This document shows positions 35,483 through 48,693 of a stretch of 64,000 nt of DNA, piece after piece. How positions within the stretch are numbered: position 1 is the stretch's first letter; each line of letters begins with the position of its first letter. The position numbers were made by a program, and so were the translations under genes. A model generated the notes under the pieces. The model was not told the DNA's origin. It was given only the letters and a program-made list of their open reading frames with translations, and did no database searches. The stretch is taken from contig OZ025652.1 of assembly GCA_964019335.1 (NCBI GenBank), positions 434,001-498,000 on the forward strand. The letters run 5' to 3'. Source of the DNA: Diplonema japonicum (taxonomy: Eukaryota; Protista; Euglenozoa: Diplonemea).

Positions 35483-38087
35483 CTAAAACTCCTCTGGTTC
35501 GTCAACGTTGAGCTGTTTCTCAACCAGCTCCTGGATACGCTTCACCTGGAAAGATATAGGTTATTTTTCTTTTTTCTTCTCTTATACCTTGTCGTGAATG
35601 GATCCCCAGTTCTCACCCTCGGAGTGCGCCCTCAGCCACCCCTTGATTTCATTAATTTTGTTGAGGTATTCCTCCCGCCTCTGGCTTGACACTTCGTCAA
35701 CAGTTCTTCGGTCCGTGGAAAGGAAAGTGAGCTTGCTGAAGACTGTGCGGCGAAGGACATTGTAGTTGTCTCTGATGTGCTCCATGCGGAGGGAGAAGTC
35801 GGACAGGTGGTCAGCAAGGAGGGCGTGGGGCTGGAATTCTTTGAGGAGCTGACGGCACTTGTTGAGGACGGGCGCGACAACTTGAATGGACTCGTTGTCA
35901 GTGGGGATGTTCAACACCTTGATCGTCTCTTCCAGGAAGCGTTTCAGCTTCGAGCTGAAATTGCTGAAAGCACGGACCTCGTTCTCAAGCTTGCTCTTCT
36001 GGTGGATCTCCAACATGATGTGTCGCTGCCTCTCATACGCATTTATCTGAAGGTTCAGCCACACTTCATTGACCTCGACCAGAGCCCTCTCCACCATCTT
36101 GTTGGGGAGCAACGCTTCGCCAGTGTCGCCAAGGTGCGCGAAGTTCTCTTCCATCGTTCCAATGTTCTGAGTCAACGACGCACAGAACTCCTGAACATGG
36201 TGCGGCTCAGACTGGGCCTCCATGTTCGTTCTCTCCTGCCTGCACCACTGCAGCAGTTTCGCGTCATCCTTCATGAACTTCGAAAGCGTCCCCTGCATAT
36301 CTGTTCTCCTCTTGTCCTCCGCTGCCAACACGATATCCCAAGCAGCTGCCGCTTTCTTGATGTTGTTAAACTTTTCGCTCGTATCACAGATATCCGCGTG
36401 CTCCTCAGGCCACCCAGTCTTCACCAAATCAGCCTTCGTGTCCTGGAGTTAAGTTTTCATGGCGTGCACCAACTAACGCGTTCATACCTCTAACGCATCG
36501 ACCTCGCCCTGGATTTTCTCCATTTCGCTCTCGTTCCAGGTGCTGGCCTCCTCTTTAAACTTATCGAAATCTTCCTGCTCAAGCCTCTGCAAATCTGTGG
36601 TGATAAATTGTAAAAAAACATCCGAGGCAGGACTCGAACCTGCAACCGCTTGATTCGTAGTCAAGCGCTCTTCCATTGAGCCACACGGACGCTGATTTTA
36701 TGGCGCTGCATATATATAGAATGGGGTTGAAAGAACGACACGTTTCGCACAGGTGGGTCCACTGCTATTTCCTCAAAAAAAAAAAAAACAGGAACAGAGG
36801 AAGCCAAGAGAGCAGTAGCGAAAAAGTGATTTGACAAGGGGGGAAAGAGGAAGGAAGCAGACGAAAGGGAAAAGAAACATGCAAGCGAGACACGGGAGTA
36901 GGGAACAAACCCTCTGAGCCAACCAAAGCGTGGAATAACCCTACACTGCAGCAGATCCAAGCTTGAGTAGCACCCAACATCAACACTTAGGCGCCCAGTG
37001 GAATGACAAAACCGAAGCGGTGCCAAAGTGGTGAAGGTATGTGGCTTGGCGACAAGAGAGCGATTACCGGCCAGTTCGCTGTCTCCCTTTCTGGAACCAA
37101 GTGACCCCCACAACTTAGATTTAGGGTAAAACCAAACCCCCTTCCAACGAAAGATACCCGCGTGCTGTCACGCGTGTGGCAAACCACCCGAGGAATGGAG
37201 CCTCACGGCTTCACCAAGCACTGGCCAAACATGATACCCTCAAAATTTGGGTGTGTTCCTTCCCTTCTGCGACGAAGTAATGGTCACAAGAAAGGCATGG
37301 TACATTGTAAGTTGGCAGGGTGGCCCCCTTCTGTTCTTCTCCCATTGTTTCTGACTGAAAGCAAAAAAGATTTTAATGCCGGACGCGACAAAAACCCGGA
37401 TGTTTGTCCGTCCGGCATTTTTAATTTTACAGTAATTAAATAAAAAAAAAGTCCGACTATTGACCAACAGGACCAAACAAGTAAGGATGACATACCAAAA
37501 CCGTGACCAAGAGGTTTAGAAGAGGTGTTGCGGTGTGCAAACTGCACCCTGTATTTCTCGAAGATAGACAGGAGCCTCATCTTGTCTGCAAGAAGTTTAG
37601 AGTAAAGCTGACCTTGCTTAGGGTTGTAGGAGAAGGGGCCTTTCTCTTCATAGGCAGAGGCAGCCTTGCGGGCAGTCTGGGCGGCTTTGGTGGCCTCGGC
37701 CAACTGGTTGTCAATGGTGGCCTCCTCGACCTTGGCTTCTTCGTTTCTTGCCTTCTCGGCTTCCAGTTCTTCTTTGAGGGCTTTCTTTACGGACTTCAGT
37801 TTTGCGTTCTCTTTTTCGATCACGTCGAGCTCTTCGATGTCTTCCCTAATGAGGTCTCTTGCCTCTTGCAGCTTGTTCTCGATGAGAGGGATGTTCGTAG
37901 AGAGGACATCGTTCATCTGCCTGCACTTCTCTTCGTAAGCAGAGGCGGCCCTTACCTTTGCGGAGTCGTCATCAGGGTGCGCCCTCACTGTCGCCTCTGC
38001 CTTCGCCACTGCTGTGTCGTGAAGCTCCGCTGCCTTCCTCAGCTCGTCACATGCCACCCTCACGGCATCGCATCCTGCAATGGCCAT
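35483..38087 (-). CDS. Coiled-coil / spectrin-repeat-like cytoskeletal protein, 4 exons; hosts tRNA-Arg in intron 1
   Basis: Exons 37496-38087, 36488-36594, 35588-36442 and 35483-35545 join in frame through GT-AG introns. LLQWC and W/L heptad patterns resemble spectrin repeats. Confidence 0.78.
36612..36618 (-). terminator. Pol III terminator of tRNA-Arg
   Basis: T7 immediately 3' of the discriminator base, 17 nt before the end of the host intron. Confidence 0.75.
36619..36690 (-). tRNA. tRNA-Arg(ACG)
   Basis: GTCCGTG-TG-GCTC AATGGAA GAGC-G-CTTGA CTACGAA TCAAG-CGGTT-GCAGG TTCGAGT CCTGC-CTCGGAT-G. The cloverleaf has a U6.U67 mismatch and is followed by T7. Confidence 0.95.
36787..37422 (+). 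ncRNA. Candidate long structured ncRNA divergent from tRNA-Arg (identity unknown)
   Basis: Starts ~97-100 bp from the tRNA 5' end. It has no T4 until 37371, nested long-range helices with plus-strand G.U pairs, and a terminal hairpin + T5. Confidence 0.5.
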
Positions 38088-38173
38088 CTTTTAATTTAGT
38101 TCTTCTCCCTAAAGTGAAAAATTGCACATCGTGTTTATTCTCACGTTCTTCGTAAACATCAGCAATAAACTAT

Positions 38174-38211
<38 letters not shown>

Positions 38212-38869
38212 CTTTTCGACCTTCATCTCCTTTCTCGGCCCTCCAGACCGCAAGGAGAAAAAACTTTCAAAGGGCTTTAAAGGAAAGAGGAAAAAGGTAA
38301 TGTTCTTCTTATTGGGAGGAAGAAGAAATGGCTTCCCCTCCCCCTTTTTTTTCTTTCCTAAGTTTTGTTGTTGTGAATTATAAAAACCTCGCCAAGGATA
38401 CGGGGAATGATGTTTGCGGGTTTTGCCGCAGCAAGTACATCGTTCTTCAACCACAACCGGGAATCCCAGTTAGCCCCTGTCATTTCCTTTACAAGGTTTT
38501 ATAATTCAGAATAAAAAAAAGCGCTTATCGGGTGGTCTTCCTATTATCTTCTCCCCCCTTTTCTTCGCCGTGTTTGTTTGTTTGGTTTCTTCTTTGTTTG
38601 TTGTTGCTATTTGTGCGCAATACAACGAGAAAAGAAAAAAAAGAGAAAAAAAGAAAAGTAGAGATAAAGAAATCTTAATCAACGGGAAAAATAAAATCGA
38701 TGGGAGTATAAACAAGTATTTAGAAAAAGAAAAAGAAAAAACGGGAATGAAAAAGGGTGAAAAAAAAAATTTTTAATTTCAAATTTCAGAAAGGAGATGT
38801 ATCTGTACATTAGTGAATTTGCCGGGTATTAAAGGAGAAAGAAGCTCCTTAAAAGGGAGAGGAAGTCAT

Positions 38870-41107
38870 TTAGATTCTCTTTCTAGGCTGGATGCGGAGG
38901 CGTTCGGTCCGCGCATCTTGTAGTTGAGACTGTTGGGAAAAGGAAAAGATTGCATGATTTCTTTTTTTCCCCCGTACCTTGAGTTGTTCGAGTCTGGAAC
39001 TTTCTTCGGTTTTGGTGGAACGCCACTTTTTTGGAGGAGTATCAGAGATAGTTGAGGATCTGCTTGCTGCAGGGGGCTGTTTGTTTTTTTTTTTTTTTTT
39101 ATTTCACTCTTCGTCATTTTCTTCACTCACTAGGGGCCTCATTATTTAACGCGAAATGGCCATTATTTAACGCGAAATCGCCATTATTTAACTAGTTAAA
39201 TAATGAGATTTTGCAGTTAAATAATGGCCCTTCAGAGTGGGAAAATGAGTCTCGCCGTGGAAAAAAATGCACCCAACCCCTTGAAAAACTTTTTTGGGGT
39301 GGGGGTATTTTGACTATTTTTGGCCATCTGAGGCCATTCCAGCCCTTAAAAGTGGGAATAAGTGCCTTACTTCCCCTTTAAATGCCATGGCGAAATAGCA
39401 ACCCCATATTACCTTAGGAAACTCCCCAAAAAGGCTGACCTGCGTGAAAAAAAACAGCAGTGAAAGCAGTGAAGAGTGAGTGACTCAAATGACGAAGAGT
39501 GAAATAAAACGACTTACTTGCCGCCAAATGAGCCATTATTTAACTCTCGTTACCCGTTTTTTTGCACTCGGGCCCTGCGGGCCCTCGTGCAAAAAATTCG
39601 GGAACTCGCGTTAAATAATGACTCATAATTTGTTGGCAATAAATAGTTATTTTTTGAATCCCTTTTGTTTTCCCCTCCTTTTTTTTTATACCTGCCGTGT
39701 ACCACTAGTTACAACGGTAGTGGACCTAAGGGTGGAACCGGCATTGGAGAGAGTGGTTTTAGAAGAAGCGACTGAAGAGGTTTCAAACCTCTTGGAAGGT
39801 GGGTGAAGGGGTGCTTTGTTGGCTGTGCGGAGCAGAGTAGAAGAAGTTGTTGATAACTTTCTTGTAGAAGGAGGGGGGCGGTCGGCAACGCGATCAGACC
39901 GCCTCTCGACATAAGGCGAAGGGGGCTGGTGGTTCCCATCCGTAATATCGGCCCATTCCCGCCTTGAAGGAGTCTTCGATCTCGAATCTACAATGGACGC
40001 TGCTTTCCTGTCATCTGATTCGTATCCAGACCGGTCGTCGTTGCTATGCAGGGAAGAATAGTACCTTGGTGCATCATCGGCTACTGAAGAATACCCGCTT
40101 GCACTGCGGTGTGGCGTCTTTGGTGGCCGGTCGTATGCCACTCGCTTAATGTTTCCGTTTTGCATTCCTTGCGACGCTGTGCTCCCTCGTTCCCATCGGC
40201 CTCCTGTGTCCTCACTTCTGTCGTCCCGTACAGATGCCAGTTTTATCTGTTCCCTTTGCTCCTCCACAAGGTGTATCAAATTGTCGTTTTTTTCCTGTTT
40301 TTCCCTCAGCAACTGTTGCTGCAACTGTTCCACGTTCTGAAACCGCTCCACCATGTCCTCCAGCTCCGCAACGCGGCCTTTCATGTCTTGCAATGCATCG
40401 TCCTTGGACTCGATAAGCTGTTTCTGCGTCTTCACAAGCATGCTGCGTTCTTCGTTTTGCCGTTCGAGTTCTTTAGTTTGATCTTCAAACAATTTTAACC
40501 GATCACTGTTGTCGGGTTTGAAGGAAAGTTGGTCTTGGAGGGATTCGAGCTCGGATCCGAGTTGTCGGTTTTGTTCTTCCAAGTTGCGGATTCTGTCAAT
40601 ACGGGTTTCAAGGTCTGCTTTCAGGGATTCGATCTCGAGGTCCTTCTCTGTGACGCCTTCCACGAGGACCGCGACTTTTTCTTCCATGTCACTTATTTGG
40701 TGAAGGAGCGGTTCATTCCCTTTGAGCTGTTCGCGTATTTCTGCGTTTTCCTTTTCCATCTCCCGTAAAGTCTCACGTAGGTGGTCCGTGTACGTTTCTT
40801 GTTCCGAACGTAGCTCTTCGATTTCATTGACACGCCGCCAATGCTCATCCCATAGGGCTGTGAGATCCTCGGTTCGCTTCTTCTCCAGCTCGTCAATTTC
40901 AACTTGGTGCTCTGATTCTTGGTCATCCAGTGCCCGTAGCAGTTCGGCCACTCTCCCAGAATCTCGGTCAACTTTGTTCTTGTCACCGGAGGAGGGAAGT
41001 TGCGCTCTTTTTTTTAAAACCCCCACAGGTATCTTTTTATCTTCTCTTGAACCCCGCATCTTGCGTTCGTCCATTCGAGCCTTGAAATTTTCTTTTTCGG
41101 AATCCAT
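38870..41107 (-). CDS. Coiled-coil protein with S/R-rich tail, 3 exons
   Basis: Exons 39692-41107, 38978-39076 and 38870-38929 join in frame to ...RIQPRKRI*. Intron 1 contains repeat copy A. Confidence 0.75.
39098..39650 (+). mobile_element. Non-autonomous Crypton-like repeat, copy A (most complete; intronic)
   Basis: Near-identical reverse complement of 41214-41675 and 41771-42291. Carries many CATTATTTAAC motifs, an asymmetric inverted repeat (39098-39119 vs 39488-39509) and a GCACTCGGGCCCTGCGGGCCCTCGTGC hairpin. Confidence 0.7.
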
Positions 41108-41213
41108 TTCCTCTTCCCCCCCCCCCTCCCCGGTCTCCTTTTTTAACGTGTGAAAACATGAAAACGAAAAAATGAGGAAAAAAGAAAAGAAAAGAAAACA
41201 AACAAATAAAAAT

Positions 41214-41675
41214 TAACTATTTATTGCCAACAAATAATGGCTCATTTGGCGGCAAGTAAGTCGTTTTATTTCACTCTTCGTCATTTGAGTCACTCACTCT
41301 TCACTGCTTTCACTGCTGTTTTTTTTCACGCAGGTCAGCCTTTTTGGGGAGTTTCCTAAGGTAATATGGGGTTGCTATTTCGCCGTGGCATTTAAAGGGG
41401 AAGTAAGGCACTTATTCCCACTTTTAAGGGCTGGAATGGCCTCAGATGGCCAAAAATAGTCAAAATACCCCCACCCCAAAAAAATTTTTCAAGGGGTTGG
41501 GTGCATTTTTTTCCACGGCGAGACTCATTTTTCCACTCTGAAGGGCCATTATTTAACTGCAAAATCTCATTATTTAACTAGTTAAATAATGGCGATTTCG
41601 CGTTAAATAATGGCCATTTCGCGTTAAATAATGAGGCCCCTAGTGAGTGAAGAAAATGACGAAGAGTGAAATAAA
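41214..41675 (-). mobile_element. Crypton-like repeat, copy B (palindrome deleted)
   Basis: Inverted relative to copy A and lacks the ~90-bp palindrome. Confidence 0.7.
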
Positions 41676-41770
41676 AAAATTAGCAGGACAATGAAATAAA
41701 TGCAGGTATAGATGCATAACGCGGGTAATAGGTGACTAAAGATGGAACCAATAAAAAAAAAAAAAAAAAA

Positions 41771-42291
41771 ATAACTATTTATTGCCAACAAATAATGAGT
41801 CATTATTTAACTCGGGTAACGAGTGTTAAATAATGGCTCATTTGGCGGCAAGTAAGTCGTTTTATTTCACTCTTCGTCATTTGAGTCACTCACTCTTCAC
41901 TGCTTTCACTGCTGTTTTTTTTCACGCAGGTCAGCTTTTTGGGGATTTTCCTAAGGTAATACAGGGTAGCTATTTCGCCGTGGCATTTAAAGGGGAAGTA
42001 AGGCACTTATTCCCACTTTTAAGGGCTGGAATGGCCTCAGATGGCCAAAAATAGTCAAAATACCCCCACCCCAAAAAAATTTTTCAAGGGGTTGGGTGCA
42101 TTTTTTTCCACGACAAGACCCATTTTTTCACTCTGAAGGGCCATTATTTAACTGCAAAATCTCATTATTTAACTAGTTAAATAATGGCGATTTCGCGTTA
42201 AATAATGGCCGTTTCGCGTTAAATAATGGCCATTTCGCGTTAAATAATGAGGCCCCTAGTGAGTGAAGAAAATGACGAAGAGTGAAATAAA
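41771..42291 (-). mobile_element. Crypton-like repeat, copy C (hairpin core deleted)
   Basis: Direct repeat of copy B. Retains the palindrome arms only and has one extra CGCGTTAAATAATGGC unit. Confidence 0.7.
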
Positions 42292-42294
42292 AAA

Positions 42295-42326
<32 letters not shown>

Positions 42327-43036
42327 AAAAAAAGGAAAAAAAGAGAATCCACAAAGCCAGGGACGTTGAGTGTCAGGGAGCCTTTTTACTTTCGGACATT
42401 TCCTTCCAAGTCTGCTGCACCTGAGACACATGCTGTTTGCCTGAAAAAAAAAAGTATTTAAAAAGTTTTATCTGTGGCAAAGAGCTCATAATTCGAGGAA
42501 GCTACATTACTCGTTGCTTGGATTGTTGCTGTCCCCAAAGCCCGCAGGTGATATCACTATTCGAATGGCGCAGTTATCTGCCATCAGGAAAGCTATCAGG
42601 AAGTTCGAGTTTTATAGAGACGTCTTGGAGGAAAGGTACAACTCAGACGGAACAGAAGAAGACAAGTTGAAACCCCGTCAGCCCTTTGGAGAATAAAAAA
42701 AAGAAAAGAAGAAGAAGGGGGGATTTTATAGCTGCATGATGGTGTAGGTACAAGGCAAAAAGAGGAGGAAAGCCTTTTTTGCCTACTCTCAACATTTCCT
42801 TGTTTCTCCTTACTTTTTCCTCGATGGCATGTAAAGCCCCCCCCCCCCCCCCCCCCCCAGTCCCTCCTCAATGAAACCCATTGAAATGCTCTATGGAATT
42901 GTCAGGAACCGTAAAGAAAAAAAAAAAAAAAAAAAAAAAAAGTGGGAAGGAGGGAGAATTTTTCCCCCCGGTTCACGGAAGAATAAAAGATCTTCGCAAA
43001 AATAATACTAAAGAAAAAAAAAAGAAAAAAGAAAAT

Positions 43037-43640
43037 AGCTATTTATAAAATGAAAATCAGATGGCCTGATTTTATTCAATACTGCATTTTATTTAATGAT
43101 GAGCTGCTCTCGCAAAGAATTTGGGTGCTGAGTGTGGCTTCGCTGCTGCCTGCTTGTAGCGGCACAATGCGACTCTTTACTGAACACGGTACTGGGTTTG
43201 GTATGATCAATTCAGCGAATTGATGTTGACGTTTATGTCAAACGTGATTCTGTGCAATGTTGAAGAAGTGGGCTGTGTCGAAGGGGCAGGGCTGAAGGGC
43301 GTTGCAGGGGACTGCTGTGTTTGTTCAACAGTTGGCCGTGTTTTTCTATTGGGTTTGATCGAGTGGTAGGTGCAAAACCTCTCCCACTCCTTCCTGTAGG
43401 CCATTTTGCTTGCCGTTGGAAGCGTGTCTTCCATCACAGTTTTGGCCTCTTTCTCGAGGCTGATGCCCTTGGCTCACTTCCCGGTCGCCTTCGGTTTTCT
43501 TCCCATTTTGCTAGAAATGACTGTGGGCGTGAAATAAAGTACCTGATTTTCACGCCCAGCAACGTTTGGCTTAAAAACATGAGGAAAAAATCAGATACTT
43601 TATTTCACGCCCGTGAAATAAAGTGAAACCTGATTTATAT
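43037..43640 (-). pseudogene. Internally deleted Crypton-like tyrosine-recombinase remnant
   Basis: ATG at 43506, an in-frame TGA, then SLEKEAKTVMEDTLPTASKMAYRKEWERFCTY (like the integrase N-terminal domain) fused to ..ITFDINVNIN*. Flanks carry GTGAAATAAA/TTTATTTCAC motifs shared with copies A-C. Confidence 0.5.
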
Positions 43641-44278
43641 CTTCCGGCCTAAATTTGAGAGAGCTGCTCAGAATTAAATAAAAAAACCTAAACTACAGTA
43701 GAGGAGACCTGGTTCATGTCAATTTGTTCTTCGGAAAAAAGAAAAAAAGAAAAAAAGTAACCATCAAAAAAAAGGATAATTAGGGGATGATTCACTTTTG
43801 TACCCAAAAGGGCTCAAAGTGGGCTTCTAGGAGATCCTGAGAGGTTGAACACGCTGGTGAATAATAACTAAGAAAAAGAAAAAGCAAAAGACAATCTCAC
43901 TTGGGCAAGGGCATGATATTCAGTGTGGATAGGCCCTCCCGGGTTTGGGGTACTAAGTGAGTTCCGGCACTTTTTTCCCAGCGAGAACTACCCCTGCATT
44001 TAAAAAAAAAATGTCTTTGAAAGAAACCTGCAGTTGTGACAGGATCGCCTAACGACAATCAACTCATCTAGTGTTTGATCCCTTCTGGAAAAAAAAAATT
44101 CACTAGGAAACGAAGTGGTTAACAACGGCCCACCAAAAAAATACTCGATAAAATTTCAGTGTGCATGGGGGTGCTCACTGAAAAAAAAAAAAGAAATGGG
44201 AGGGGTGGCGAGAATAATAAAAAAAAGTACAATTATTATTATTATTTTCATTTTTTTCTTTTCACGTTCAGAATTGAT

Positions 44279-45505
44279 TCATGATGTAAGAGCTTTAGAG
44301 TGGATAGAAGAGGCTCGGATTCGGGAGGGGCGAGAAATGGCTGTCTGGGGGCGACGCCCTATAGGCCGTCCACGCCCAATAGGCGAAGGTGTCACAGGGG
44401 AAGTGGGAGACAAGGACGACTCCGAGCAATGCCCCATACTGCAAAGATGCGGGGATCGCACTGCAAACGCCGTAAAGCCAACAGTCGCAGGTGCCACTGC
44501 AGGGGGAGCAACTTTTCGTACATCCGACCTGTAGACAACCAGCTCAGGGGTGCCTGGACCTTTAACTTTGTACCACCCACTTCGATCTACCCCCAACACC
44601 TCTCCCCTCCTCCAGTTCTTGCCGACTCTGTACTCTACCTCACCTTCGTCTTCTTCGAATTCTTGACTGCCTTCTGTTTGCAGCAGTTGCGCCTGATCAG
44701 AGACGGCCTCCATCTCCTCTTTCGGAGGGTTGTCCTCCTTGACCTCTTTCTTCGACTCCGCAAACAGCTCCCGATCCTTCTCCGCTCTACAGTGATGCCG
44801 CCATACGAGCCACCCGAGTAGCAGCAAAAAGAATACTATCAGCAACGATATCACGATGTACATGTTATCATTTCCATCTGACTCGGGCGGCATCGCGACT
44901 GTTTGTGTCACGGAATCGACCGGAGGGGGGCATGGTGGGACAGTGGCGCAGGTCCAGTTTATCATAAAAGCTGTGCCTAGGAATGAGGGTTGCCTAGTAG
45001 TGTCGAGTATCAACACAGCACCCTTGCCAGCTGTAACAGGCGGTATTGGTGCGAAGCTGCTGCTGCCACACCCTGTGTTGAGTAGTGTGTTGGTGACAAC
45101 CCCTGACTGGTTCCAGGAACGAGTCTCGAAAATATTGCATGACCCAGTTGTGCATAAAACCCCTGATGACCCCACCTGAGCCGCAGGATCGCAGCCGGTT
45201 TGGAACCCTGTGAAGATCAAATCAACTTTCCCACTGCACACAATCCTGTAACACGCTTTTTGTGAGATGTCTGCTCTTACAACTAAACTACTGGCTCCAC
45301 CATCGCCTTGGCAGTTCTCACCCACCTCTTCTACTCCGCCTGGACAGTCACCCCCTAAGGTTCCTACCTTACACACCCCATTCGCAAGCGTCCACCCGTC
45401 TGCGCACTTCTGACATGTACCTTGGTCAGTCAATGAACACCCTGGGATCTGGCCCTCAACTACGCTGAACAGCAGCAGCACGCAAAGTGTGCTCCAATGA
45501 TGCAT
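44279..45505 (-). CDS. Type I membrane protein: signal peptide, Cys-rich/CUB-like ectodomain, one TM helix, cytoplasmic tail
   Basis: Signal MHHWSTLCVLLLFSVVEG; CQKCADGWTLANGVC; TM YIVISLLIVFFLLLLGWLVW. Confidence 0.8.
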   Translation of the reverse strand: MHHWSTLCVLLLFSVVEGQIPGCSLTDQGTCQKCADGWTLANGVCKVGTLGGDCPGGVEEVGENCQGDGGASSLVVRADISQKACYRIVCSGKVDLIFTGFQTGCDPAAQVGSSGVLCTTGSCNIFETRSWNQSGVVTNTLLNTGCGSSSFAPIPPVTAGKGAVLILDTTRQPSFLGTAFMINWTCATVPPCPPPVDSVTQTVAMPPESDGNDNMYIVISLLIVFFLLLLGWLVWRHHCRAEKDRELFAESKKEVKEDNPPKEEMEAVSDQAQLLQTEGSQEFEEDEGEVEYRVGKNWRRGEVLGVDRSGWYKVKGPGTPELVVYRSDVRKVAPPAVAPATVGFTAFAVRSPHLCSMGHCSESSLSPTSPVTPSPIGRGRPIGRRPQTAISRPSRIRASSIHSKALTS

Positions 45506-45638
45506 TTCGGCATTTTAATATCAGAAGGTGCTGTCCCTGTTTGAAATTGAATCTAAACTCTCCCCGATCTTTGTATTCAGAGTCAAAGTCCGTAAAGAAG
45601 CCAATAGAGGAGATATTTGGTCAATTGAAAAACTGACT

Positions 45639-47267
45639 TTATCTTTGAAAAGGCCGCGTGTAGATCGCGAAAGTTGTGGCCTCGGCTGTGTAGGGGACAG
45701 GCGTCGGAGACGTCGAGGGGCGAAGGGACATGTGATTCCCCGAGCTTATTTCCTTGAACAATTTTTTGAAGGGAGATTGGTTCAATTCCTGCTGAGGCTC
45801 ATTTTTCACGGGTTTGTCCTCATTCAGGTGTTCAATGCGTGGGACAGGTACGGGCAGGTTCACATCGATTTCCGTCTTGCGCATCCTTTTTATGTCCTCT
45901 TCAACGCGTCGTTTCTCCAGTTCTGTCTCCTGGTTTCTCCTCTCTTTGAGCACTCTCTCTTGTCTGTGCCTCTCGTCCATGGCTGCTTTGTACTTAATGT
46001 CCATCTCTATCTTGATCCGCTGCATCATTGAGTCGTTTTCATTTTTCTTCTCCAACCTGATCTTGTTCTCTTTCATTGTTTCCTCTTTGAGCCGTTTCTT
46101 TTCTCGTCTGTGTCCTGCTTCTTCTTCTCGATCCTGAGCTAGCCGGCGTAGGTACTGCTCTTTGAGAACGGAACGGGTCACCAGCTCACGGTTTCGTTCC
46201 TCCTTTAGCTCGTTTAACTTCAATCGCTTCGACCAAACTTTTTCAGCCTTTTCAGAGCTTTGCCTTAGTTTGTCCGCTGCTAGTTCTTGTGTTTCAGTTC
46301 TATTTTGTGATATTCTTAGATCGTCATCTTCATGGGTGCGTGCAAGTGTTGCCTTCGATTCCTCCAGTTGCATCGCCTGCTGCTCGATCATATTCGATAC
46401 AGCGACAGACTTCCGCAACCTGTTCATATGCATCACCTCTCTTCGTTTCACCTGGTTCAAAACAACGTTCTGCTTCCTTTCAGTGTGCAGTTCAAGCCTT
46501 TCGCTGATTTCGTCTTTCACACATCTTATTTTTTCCTCGTGCATAGCATGTGCCTGTGCTGCTTTCTTCTTCACCATTTCCGTACTCTCTAATATGGCAG
46601 CACTTTTGTTCTCTCGTTCAATTGTTTGTTGCTTTATGTAGTTCATCTCACTTTCTTTTCTAGATTGCTCCTTGAGTTCTAGTTTGACTTTTCCTTGGAG
46701 ATACATCATCTCGGTCTGCCTCCGCACACGGAAGAGCCTTTCCAGTCTTTTTTTCTGCTTTTCGCGGGAGGCCTTTTGGTACGCAATTTTCTTCTTTGCT
46801 TCCACTTGCTCGCGTATCTTCTCTCTTCTTTTTATGTTTTCTTGCAGTTGACGACGTGCTACTTCGGCTTTGCGTAGACCCATAACCTGTCGCATGCTTT
46901 TCTCACGAAACTTCTCGATCTCTTTTTCTCTCTGAAGTAATTCGTCTTCCGTTTCCTGCGGCAAAGCCGCTTTGACATCAGCAGAAACACCTAAAACCCT
47001 GGCCAATTTGACACGCGTGCGAGTTTTGTGGTACAATTGCAGCAGGAGCTTCTCTCGTTCCCTCTCAATTAAACACTTTTTAGTCTTGCGTCTATTTTCT
47101 GCTGCCTCCATTTGAAGTCCCTCCAAATCGGTTGACTTCAGCAGCTCCTCCACCTCTATCCCTTGGCGCTTGCATGCTAACACCGTAGCTCCATCCAGCT
47201 CGTCTTCAGGGGCTTGTACCTTGAATAAATCCCTGAACAACTCATCCTCCCCTTCGCTGAACTCCAT
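45639..47267 (-). CDS. Long coiled-coil protein (E/K/R-rich, possibly flagellar)
   Basis: ~542-aa charged helical ORF. Confidence 0.78.
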   Translation of the reverse strand: MEFSEGEDELFRDLFKVQAPEDELDGATVLACKRQGIEVEELLKSTDLEGLQMEAAENRRKTKKCLIEREREKLLLQLYHKTRTRVKLARVLGVSADVKAALPQETEDELLQREKEIEKFREKSMRQVMGLRKAEVARRQLQENIKRREKIREQVEAKKKIAYQKASREKQKKRLERLFRVRRQTEMMYLQGKVKLELKEQSRKESEMNYIKQQTIERENKSAAILESTEMVKKKAAQAHAMHEEKIRCVKDEISERLELHTERKQNVVLNQVKRREVMHMNRLRKSVAVSNMIEQQAMQLEESKATLARTHEDDDLRISQNRTETQELAADKLRQSSEKAEKVWSKRLKLNELKEERNRELVTRSVLKEQYLRRLAQDREEEAGHRREKKRLKEETMKENKIRLEKKNENDSMMQRIKIEMDIKYKAAMDERHRQERVLKERRNQETELEKRRVEEDIKRMRKTEIDVNLPVPVPRIEHLNEDKPVKNEPQQELNQSPFKKLFKEISSGNHMSLRPSTSPTPVPYTAEATTFAIYTRPFQR

Positions 47268-47525
47268 CACCTAGAAACGGTGCAATAGAATAGAAGCAAA
47301 GAAAAAAAGGAGAAACAAGAAAGAAACGTAACGCGTTGAAGAGAATTTCACTGAATATTGGTCTCTGCGAGCAAATGTAGCTTAGCTACTGGGAATAAAC
47401 ACGTCAATAGTCTATTATGACACAACGAGGTCAGGAGGAGCAAGTGATCATAGAATTTCTTTTTCTTTTAAACACTAGGATTACTACGTCATTATTTTCT
47501 CCGAAATTAACTTACTTGTGAAGAT

Positions 47526-48693
47526 CTATTCTTTCTTCTCTTGATCTTCGTAGTCGAGCTTCACTACGTCCTGCACGCCCTCCCAAAACTGGATGCAGTT
47601 TACAACTGTTGTTTTTGAAATGAATGTGCAAACATACATTGTTTGGCAGCCATGAAAGGGACAGAGATCCACAAGGCTGCGTTGAGCAGCGCATAGTTCC
47701 AGAAGTAGCATGCATAGAGGAGAAGGTAGAACCCTTCCTGTCCCATGCACAAGACTTGAAGGCAGAGCCTTGAAGAGTAGTAAACAGTGAGAATTTTGCT
47801 GCGGGTCTTGGAAGTGTCCTTGTGGCTTGCGAACACACCACCCACGCTGTACATTCTGGTGTAGTGCGACACAAAGTCAAGTCCAATAAGAAGTGCAGCA
47901 GCCGTCGGCACCATCCACCTCATACCTTTCGTGTCGTTGTCCACATACAAATGCGACAACAGCGCTACGAAACCCGCGGTCGCTGCCCTGTCAGTGATCA
48001 TGTCAAAAATCGCACCGAACCTGCTGCACTGATTGAAATATCTTGCCGCCATCCCGTCCGCGCCATCAAGAACAAACCCCAACGTGTAGCAACCCAGGAA
48101 TATCACAGGGTCATCGAAGAAGTAGATGTAACTCACGACTGTTAAAACTACCCTGAAGTAGCCTGTGAAAGAAAATTAAATAAAAAAGCACCCACCGTGG
48201 GGATCGAACCCACGACCATTGGATTAAAAGTCCAACGCTCTACCGCTGAGCTAGGTGGGCTTACAAACGATTTTGCGAATGATGTCAATTACTACAAGGG
48301 GTACATAATATCTGCTTACACAGGTTGTAAAAACACACCCTCTTGTCATTTGTACAAATATTTATTATTTTCCCTCTTGAGGTCAGGATGGAGACAAACA
48401 GCAAACTGGGCCCGTCGGTCCGAGTCACGTAGGTCTACGCGGCTTGGAATTAAAGTAATTCAGTCCTCCTCGGCTGATCCAAACAGGTGCACGGTCATGC
48501 TTCCCTTCACCTTTCCCCTTCCCAGGTGTTGCTCCCCATGGCGGCACCTTTTGGTAAAAAAAAAAAGGGGGGGAAGGCAAAACATTGTATGCCACCCAAG
48601 TTTATCATTTTAAAAGGTGTTGTCTTCACATTTTTTCTTTTTCGTCATACCAATGATATTCGGCACAAACAGAAAAACGTTGCGCTTCGCCAT
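47526..48693 (-). CDS. PIS: Phosphatidylinositol synthase (CDP-alcohol phosphotransferase), 3 exons; hosts tRNA-Lys in intron 1
   Basis: Spliced start MAKRNVFLFVPNIIG|YFRV and motif LDGADGMAARYFNQCSRFGAIFDMITDR. Exons 48651-48693, 47638-48162 and 47526-47605 are in frame. Confidence 0.92.
48189..48260 (-). tRNA. tRNA-Lys(TTT)
   Basis: GCCCACC-TA-GCTC AGCGGTA GAGC-G-TTGGA CTTTTAA TCCAA-TGGTC-GTGGG TTCGATC CCCAC-GGTGGGT-G, followed by CTTTTTT. Confidence 0.95.
48379..48552 (+). ncRNA. Candidate ~175-nt structured ncRNA divergent from tRNA-Lys (identity unknown)
   Basis: Helices 48381-48395/48463-48479, 48419-48448 and 48524-48549 contain plus-strand G.U pairs, and the region ends in T4. Confidence 0.5.

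Follow-up and report, generated by a model that had tools for sequence, protein, structure and literature searches.

Sense tRNA genes just ahead of splice acceptors in Diplonema japonicum: two first introns and a probable genome-wide pattern

Introduction

In trypanosomatids, the genes encoding the U small nuclear RNAs (U-snRNAs) and 7SL RNA have a divergent transfer RNA (tRNA) gene upstream, and the A and B boxes of the latter serve as their promoter. Retrotransposons that target tRNA genes are also known, examples being the TRE elements of Dictyostelium and Ty3 of yeast. The present analysis concerns a stretch of 64,000 nucleotides from the marine protist Diplonema japonicum (contig C5:434001-498000, hereafter the window, to which all positions refer unless another locus is named), in which a tRNA-Arg(ACG) and a tRNA-Lys(UUU) gene lie within introns, close to the 3' splice site. 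It also concerns the position of tRNA genes relative to splice acceptors in the 62.5-Mb assembly, over which the genome searches were made. An initial annotation of the window had interpreted the two introns as housing bidirectional transcription units of RNA polymerase III (Pol III), each driven by its tRNA gene.

Genes for tRNAs nested in introns have been described in Caenorhabditis (PMC3342880), with further cases in C. elegans and Drosophila (PMC2943599); in the literature on such genes, no positional rule relative to the 3' splice site was found. In the kinetoplastids, the sister group, nearly all tRNA genes lie outside the polycistronic units, those of trypanosomes being located in gene-free stretches of 5 kb or more, with the exception of the Trypanosoma brucei tRNA-Sec gene, which resides in a polycistron of RNA polymerase II (Pol II), depends on Pol II for its transcription and is without A and B boxes (PMC2943599). 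In diplonemids, co-directional genes are transcribed as clusters, and essentially every messenger RNA receives a leader by trans-splicing (PMC10161547). The intron consensus of D. japonicum is G/GTATG..CAG (a slash marks a splice boundary), and its 3' splice region is unusually A-rich with CAG at the end (PMC12621601).

Results and Discussion

tRNA genes at the 3' ends of two first introns

The explanation which we favour, with a probability of about 0.62, is that the two introns carry ordinary sense tRNA genes at their 3' ends and transposon debris upstream of these, and that they represent one case of a genome-wide habit. Two tRNA genes, and exactly two, are found in the whole window by ARAGORN and by the Rfam covariance model RF00005 (gathering score 29), both on the minus strand and thus in the orientation of their host genes: tRNA-Arg(ACG) at 36619..36690 (64.8 bits) and tRNA-Lys(UUU) at 48189..48260 (72.4 bits). 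Each forms a cloverleaf with a valid anticodon; the A and B boxes of both are intact, the B boxes match GGTTCRANYCC, and an oligo-T run (T7 and T6, respectively) begins 0-1 nt past the discriminator base. Judged by these features, both are ordinary tRNA genes with the normal Pol III signals, that is A and B boxes and oligo-T.

What distinguishes the two genes is how little separates them from the end of the intron. The trailer of tRNA-Arg (36595..36618, minus strand) consists of the T7 terminator at 36612-36618 and a 17-nt tract, while that of tRNA-Lys (48163..48188, minus strand) holds a T6 terminator at 48182-48187 and a 19-nt A/T-rich tract; both tracts contain no G until the final AG and end in CACAG. 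Read directly from the sequence, the distance from the tRNA 3' end to the last intron base is 24 nt for tRNA-Arg (36595) and 26 nt for tRNA-Lys (48163). The layout reported in the initial annotation, a sense tRNA 24 or 26 nt ahead of the intron end with oligo-T in the trailer, is in this respect confirmed by ARAGORN, Rfam and the sequence itself.

Transcript evidence was taken from contigs of three RNA-like runs (X1, X2 and X3, from two studies and probably of polyadenylated RNA), with a DNA run (X4) as contrast. Contigs of all three RNA-like runs join 36594 to 37496, which removes 901 nt with GT..AG ends on the minus strand and fixes the 3' splice joint behind the tRNA-Arg trailer, whereas the joint is absent from the DNA run. 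The intron (intron 1, 36595..37495, minus strand) has the boundaries G/GTATG and CACAG/. The same contigs carry loose ends at 38109 which are the reverse complement of the 3' part of the spliced leader, and as the leader is joined upstream of a splice joint seen in RNA and missing in DNA, intron 1 is both spliced and the first of its gene. The leader acceptor (38087..38124, minus strand) comprises a T5 run, an 8-nt spacer and AG, with the leader joined at 38109 and the ATG at 38087, leaving a 5' untranslated region of 22 nt; it provides an in-genome reference for a real acceptor. The host gene encodes a coiled-coil, weakly spectrin-like protein, with a weak match to the Pfam Spectrin family in exon 3 (exons were searched against Pfam singly, one exon per search).

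Intron 2 (48163..48650, minus strand, 488 nt) is intron 1 of a gene for a CDP-alcohol phosphatidyltransferase, similar to phosphatidylinositol synthase (PIS). Its reality is supported by homology, as the PIS domain appears to run on across it: exon 1 ends in ..PNII+G, unspliced read-through meets a stop after 14 codons, and the match of exon 2 to PF01066 begins at profile position 10 and at the second residue of the exon. Frame and boundaries (G/GTATG..CACAG/G) agree with this. The initial reconstruction of both introns, at 901 and 488 nt and as first introns, hence stands, for intron 1 by three RNA-like runs and the leader joint, and for intron 2 by Pfam continuity, frame and boundary consensus. 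Both fit the published D. japonicum consensus, and the leader tail on the transcripts fits the trans-splicing known from diplonemids.

The two genes resemble the nested tRNAs of Caenorhabditis and Drosophila in being independent Pol III tRNA genes inside Pol II introns, but differ from them in the near-fixed distance of 20-30 nt to the 3' splice site, in the sense orientation and, as described below, in the occurrence of the same arrangement before probable spliced-leader acceptors.

At 36650, within tRNA-Arg, the RNA-like contigs and the greater part of the DNA depth show a T>C difference, which is attributed not to editing but to paralogous copies of tRNA-Arg(ACG) aligned here. A further match to a B-box plus T5 pattern, at 45779-45806 on the plus strand, lies inside coding sequence, is called by neither ARAGORN nor Rfam and is probably due to chance.

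Position of tRNA genes relative to acceptors across the genome

The generality of the arrangement was assessed in a sample of 64 non-redundant tRNAs, derived from the 63 best-scoring Rfam hits and their neighbours, hence a part of the tRNAs of the genome; it was built by adding 40 loci of the 61 Rfam-listed tRNAs other than the two of the window. An ACAG ending 15-42 nt downstream follows 22 of the 64 tRNAs, compared to 2/64 in the antisense-upstream control and 5/64 in the same-strand upstream control. It is the first AG past the T-run in 20/64, as against 6% of 703 other T6+ runs (Fisher p = 9e-9). The distance from tRNA to ACAG has a median of 24.5 nt and an interquartile range of 22-28 nt, and the composition of the intervening spacer (A 37%, C 31%, G 8%) agrees, in being A/C-rich and G-poor, with the A-rich 3' splice region published for D. 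japonicum (PMC12621601).

A second sign of nearby acceptors is given by the genes that follow. ATG-initiated open reading frames (ORFs) of at least 150 codons, starting no more than 60 nt past that AG, are found after 10 of the 64 tRNAs, compared to 2.3-4.6% in controls, and eight of these ten contain cellular Pfam domains (HSP70, calpain, TTL and others). In the HSP70 ORF, at locus C65:497103, position 1 of the profile is aligned at residue 6, and given this alignment from the profile start the AG at this locus is most simply a spliced-leader acceptor. By either sign, ACAG or ORF start, 28/64 tRNAs abut a likely acceptor. A scan of the whole genome, made with a crude pattern of B box, T5 and tetramer, returned 41 ordinary tRNA loci with ACAG 6-24 nt past the T5 run, against 26 and ~11 for the control tetramers GACA and AACG, respectively.

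Two further sources of evidence were considered and set aside. Local gene orientation as judged from long ORFs around each tRNA was too noisy and was left unused, being confounded by GC-rich antisense ORFs and by sense retroelement ORFs; and additional cis-intron cases sought from open frames past the AG involve exons too short to be judged without gene models.

One could imagine that such proximity is a coincidence of compact non-coding space, in which tRNA genes land anywhere, have little room to either side, and have their position exaggerated by later transposon insertions upstream. The window introns would be compatible with this, since they measure only about 250-310 nt once the repeat fragments described below are subtracted, and the retroelements of this genome do insert upstream of tRNAs and so enlarge that side only. 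However, the enrichment depends on both orientation and motif (22/64 versus 2/64 and 5/64, and p = 9e-9 relative to other T-runs), the distribution of distances is narrow, and real genes have their start codon only tens of nucleotides downstream, all of which renders coincidence unlikely.

The sense orientation of the tRNAs inside Pol II units also brings to mind maturation from a Pol II precursor by RNase P and RNase Z, instead of or besides Pol III transcription, with the T-run being mainly a part of the acceptor. A precedent exists in the tRNA-Sec of T. brucei, a Pol II transcript whose gene is embedded in a polycistron between other genes (PMC2943599), and the D. japonicum loci are similar to it in that the tRNA sits between the 3' end of the upstream gene and the downstream acceptor in a co-directional cluster. 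The likeness ends there, as tRNA-Sec is an exception in T. brucei while in D. japonicum this placement is found for numerous tRNAs of the ordinary kind with their usual Pol III signals, and as consensus A and B boxes are kept here. Moreover, an oligo-T run (T4+) lies within 14 nt of the tRNA end in 64/64 sampled tRNAs, whether an acceptor is downstream or not, which is the normal signature of Pol III. We consider a Pol II origin of these tRNAs very unlikely.

Several points weigh against a general association of tRNA genes with acceptors. More than half of the sampled tRNAs are without the pattern, and two of the positives (L045 and L048) simply face another tRNA; the sample itself stems from the best Rfam hits and their neighbours, and the genome-wide excess of ACAG by the crude scan is only ~2- to 4-fold. 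Use of the acceptor was read from RNA at intron 1, the AGs after other tRNAs being candidate acceptors. In addition, acceptors in D. japonicum are reported to be A-rich and not U-rich (PMC12621601), in which case the T-run itself may be irrelevant and closeness alone may matter, and a branch point would need to fall within the short trailer or within the tRNA.

Even with these reservations, sense tRNA genes docked ahead of acceptors, with debris on their upstream side, remain the explanation that we prefer. According to it, sense tRNA genes in co-directional Pol II clusters would often have their terminator ~20-30 nt upstream of an acceptor, being either a cis 3' splice site, as in the window introns, or the position at which the following gene receives its spliced leader. 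In the pre-mRNA, the acceptor-proximal signal would consist of, or overlap with, the U-run together with the A/C-rich trailer, and a sense tRNA gene would be tolerated chiefly at places where the acceptor promoted by it is also the genuine one. Selection of this kind may have caused the arrangement and may limit where sense tRNA genes persist. The upstream side of the tRNA, lying in RNA that is discarded anyway, could in turn absorb tRNA-targeting retroelements.

The proposal of the initial annotation that the terminator doubles as a splice signal thereby gains statistical backing, as the arrangement recurs and is orientation-dependent, although this support is not experimental. A more far-reaching version would have tRNA genes systematically docked ~20-30 nt before cis and spliced-leader acceptors, with terminator and trailer as a working part of the acceptor signal, and would let tRNA genes, together with a mobile cassette ending in CACCACAG, define or create acceptors, or else couple tRNA maturation to pre-mRNA processing; we regard this version as possible but on the whole doubtful. 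A search of the literature for tRNA genes lying next to splice acceptors of diplonemids found no description, and the docking arrangement seems to be undescribed.

The cassette just mentioned lies in a dispersed repeat of ~40 copies located outside the window (G000 C3:199669-201202, C4:71745-73267 and others), which contains tRNA-like modules, each having a B box and a T-run of its own. In one of the modules, T7-9 is followed by a trailer ending CACCACAG/GGGAGAAACG, giving it the appearance of a portable unit of tRNA-like sequence plus acceptor. The CACCACAG ending also follows the tRNA-Arg of the window and two other tRNAs. It might be argued on these grounds that tRNA, T-run, A/C tract and CAG move or are duplicated together, bringing their acceptor with them and creating or relocating introns and spliced-leader sites. 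Against this, paralogous tRNAs have trailers of different sequence, alike only in composition and in the final CAG, and neither target-site duplications nor shared flanks are seen around the two window tRNAs, so that we give such mobility little credence.

Compared to the kinetoplastids, in which tRNA genes are kept almost entirely out of the polycistronic units, D. japonicum instead appears to have its units interspersed with ordinary tRNA genes, at a stereotyped spot just before acceptors. If terminator and trailer do constitute an acceptor signal, two systems of polymerase and RNA processing would make use of a single short sequence. This would explain where sense tRNA genes survive in a wholly trans-spliced genome, and would offer annotators a simple predictor of spliced-leader sites.

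Mobile-element fragments upstream of the tRNA genes

The intron sequence upstream of each tRNA consists mostly of decayed mobile elements belonging to three unrelated families, A and C in intron 1 and B in intron 2. The family A fragment (36793..36992) is part of a unit of ~283 nt adjoining (AAT)n or an A-run, of which at least 25 copies with 84-92% identity occur; DNA depth over the fragment is ~20,300 compared to ~520 in the flanks (~40-fold). The family C fragment (37006..37434, plus strand) has at least 15 matching sites, which all have their end in common, consisting of a hairpin, a T-run and a short motif, and its hairpin at 37375-37419 with the T5 that follows is thus the conserved subterminal structure of the element. 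In locus L067 this terminus occurs as an inverted pair, as expected of a terminal-inverted-repeat or foldback element.

In intron 2, the family B fragment (48391..48567, plus strand; >40 copies, 88-97% identity) represents the 5'-truncated 3' end of a poly(A)-tailed retrotransposon, with an A11 tail at 48557-48567 and an internal deletion of 66 nt. Copies elsewhere, examined in loci extending ~1.7 kb from the 3' end of the element, are 477-1336 nt long and have one common 3' end, which implies variable 5' truncation. In locus L019, a target-site duplication of 9-10 nt flanks a 5'-truncated element of 1.25 kb and its A13 tail; the insertion lies directly before a tRNA-Glu gene. By its poly(A) tail, target-site duplication and variable 5' truncation, family B is most readily classified as a retrotransposon without long terminal repeats (non-LTR). 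Like TRE and Ty3, it inserts close to tRNA genes, 0-15 nt upstream and in the tRNA orientation. The inserted copies bear a tail of poly(A) and are accompanied by a duplicated target site. The window fragment, in contrast to a typical tRNA-targeted insertion, is opposite in orientation and 130 nt away from the tRNA, and is debris.

In about one third of the tRNAs sampled, the 5' end is preceded at a distance of 3-15 nt by a retroelement tail, poly(A) or (TTA)n, in the orientation of the tRNA (for example L019:470-1730 and L018:1270-1360). On the sequence evidence, these retroelements are tRNA-targeted retrotransposons.

These fragments are the very segments in which the initial annotation had seen structured RNA genes on the opposite strand. 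Its reading, that a new structured RNA is encoded by a divergent Pol III gene ~100-120 bp upstream of each tRNA and driven by the latter, with the units parked in introns, drew on a layout which both introns do share, namely a spacer followed by an opposite-strand segment ending in a hairpin and T4/T5. Also as in the trypanosomatid tRNA-linked Pol III genes, the window tRNA faces away from the opposite-strand segment over a spacer of ~100 bp. The spacers measure 101 and 130 nt, however, so that the distance is not fixed, whereas in the trypanosomatid pairs it is ~95-105 bp with a conserved T-run terminator, which the window segments lack. Nor is the partner a gene of the kind found in those pairs, being multi-copy mobile-element debris (~15 to >40 copies per family), unrelated between the two loci and of no known RNA family.

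The hairpins with T4/T5, taken as the ends of RNA genes, are likewise termini of elements: in family C the structure is conserved as part of the terminus, and in family B it is the 3'-terminal stem of the element, other family members reading CTATTGG at the position of the T4. The segments, although described as foldable, fold no better than shuffled sequence on the plus strand (z -0.84 and -1.44). In a search of both introns on both strands with E up to 10, Rfam gave no family other than tRNA among the credible matches; matches to frnS and to microRNA families have E >1, coincide in position with the transposon hairpin and are due to chance. No contig of the three RNA-like runs covers 36693-37336, which is weak evidence, as polyadenylated libraries would miss Pol III RNAs.

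The opposite-strand segments are not partner RNA genes but transposon fragments, and bidirectional Pol III units driven by the tRNAs are rejected on repeat identity, lack of an Rfam match, folding and non-conservation of the T4, leaving them extremely improbable. Two false candidates for new structured RNAs are thereby removed from the window. The layout common to both introns is instead ascribed to two independent causes, the docking of tRNA genes before acceptors and the build-up of transposon debris upstream.

Further observations around host gene 1

Besides intron 1, two tiny minus-strand introns, at 35544-35585 (42 nt) and 36442-36486 (45 nt), are removed in the same RNA contigs, no such joints being present in the DNA run. 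The 42-nt intron is largely purine-rich, and a pyrimidine tract is absent until its last few bases. An A-run of ~32 nt (38182-38213, minus strand) is located ~70 nt upstream of the spliced-leader acceptor of the host gene. Further upstream, around 38330-38730 and 39130-39350, repeat-type joints are numerous in the DNA contigs and depth exceeds 500,000.

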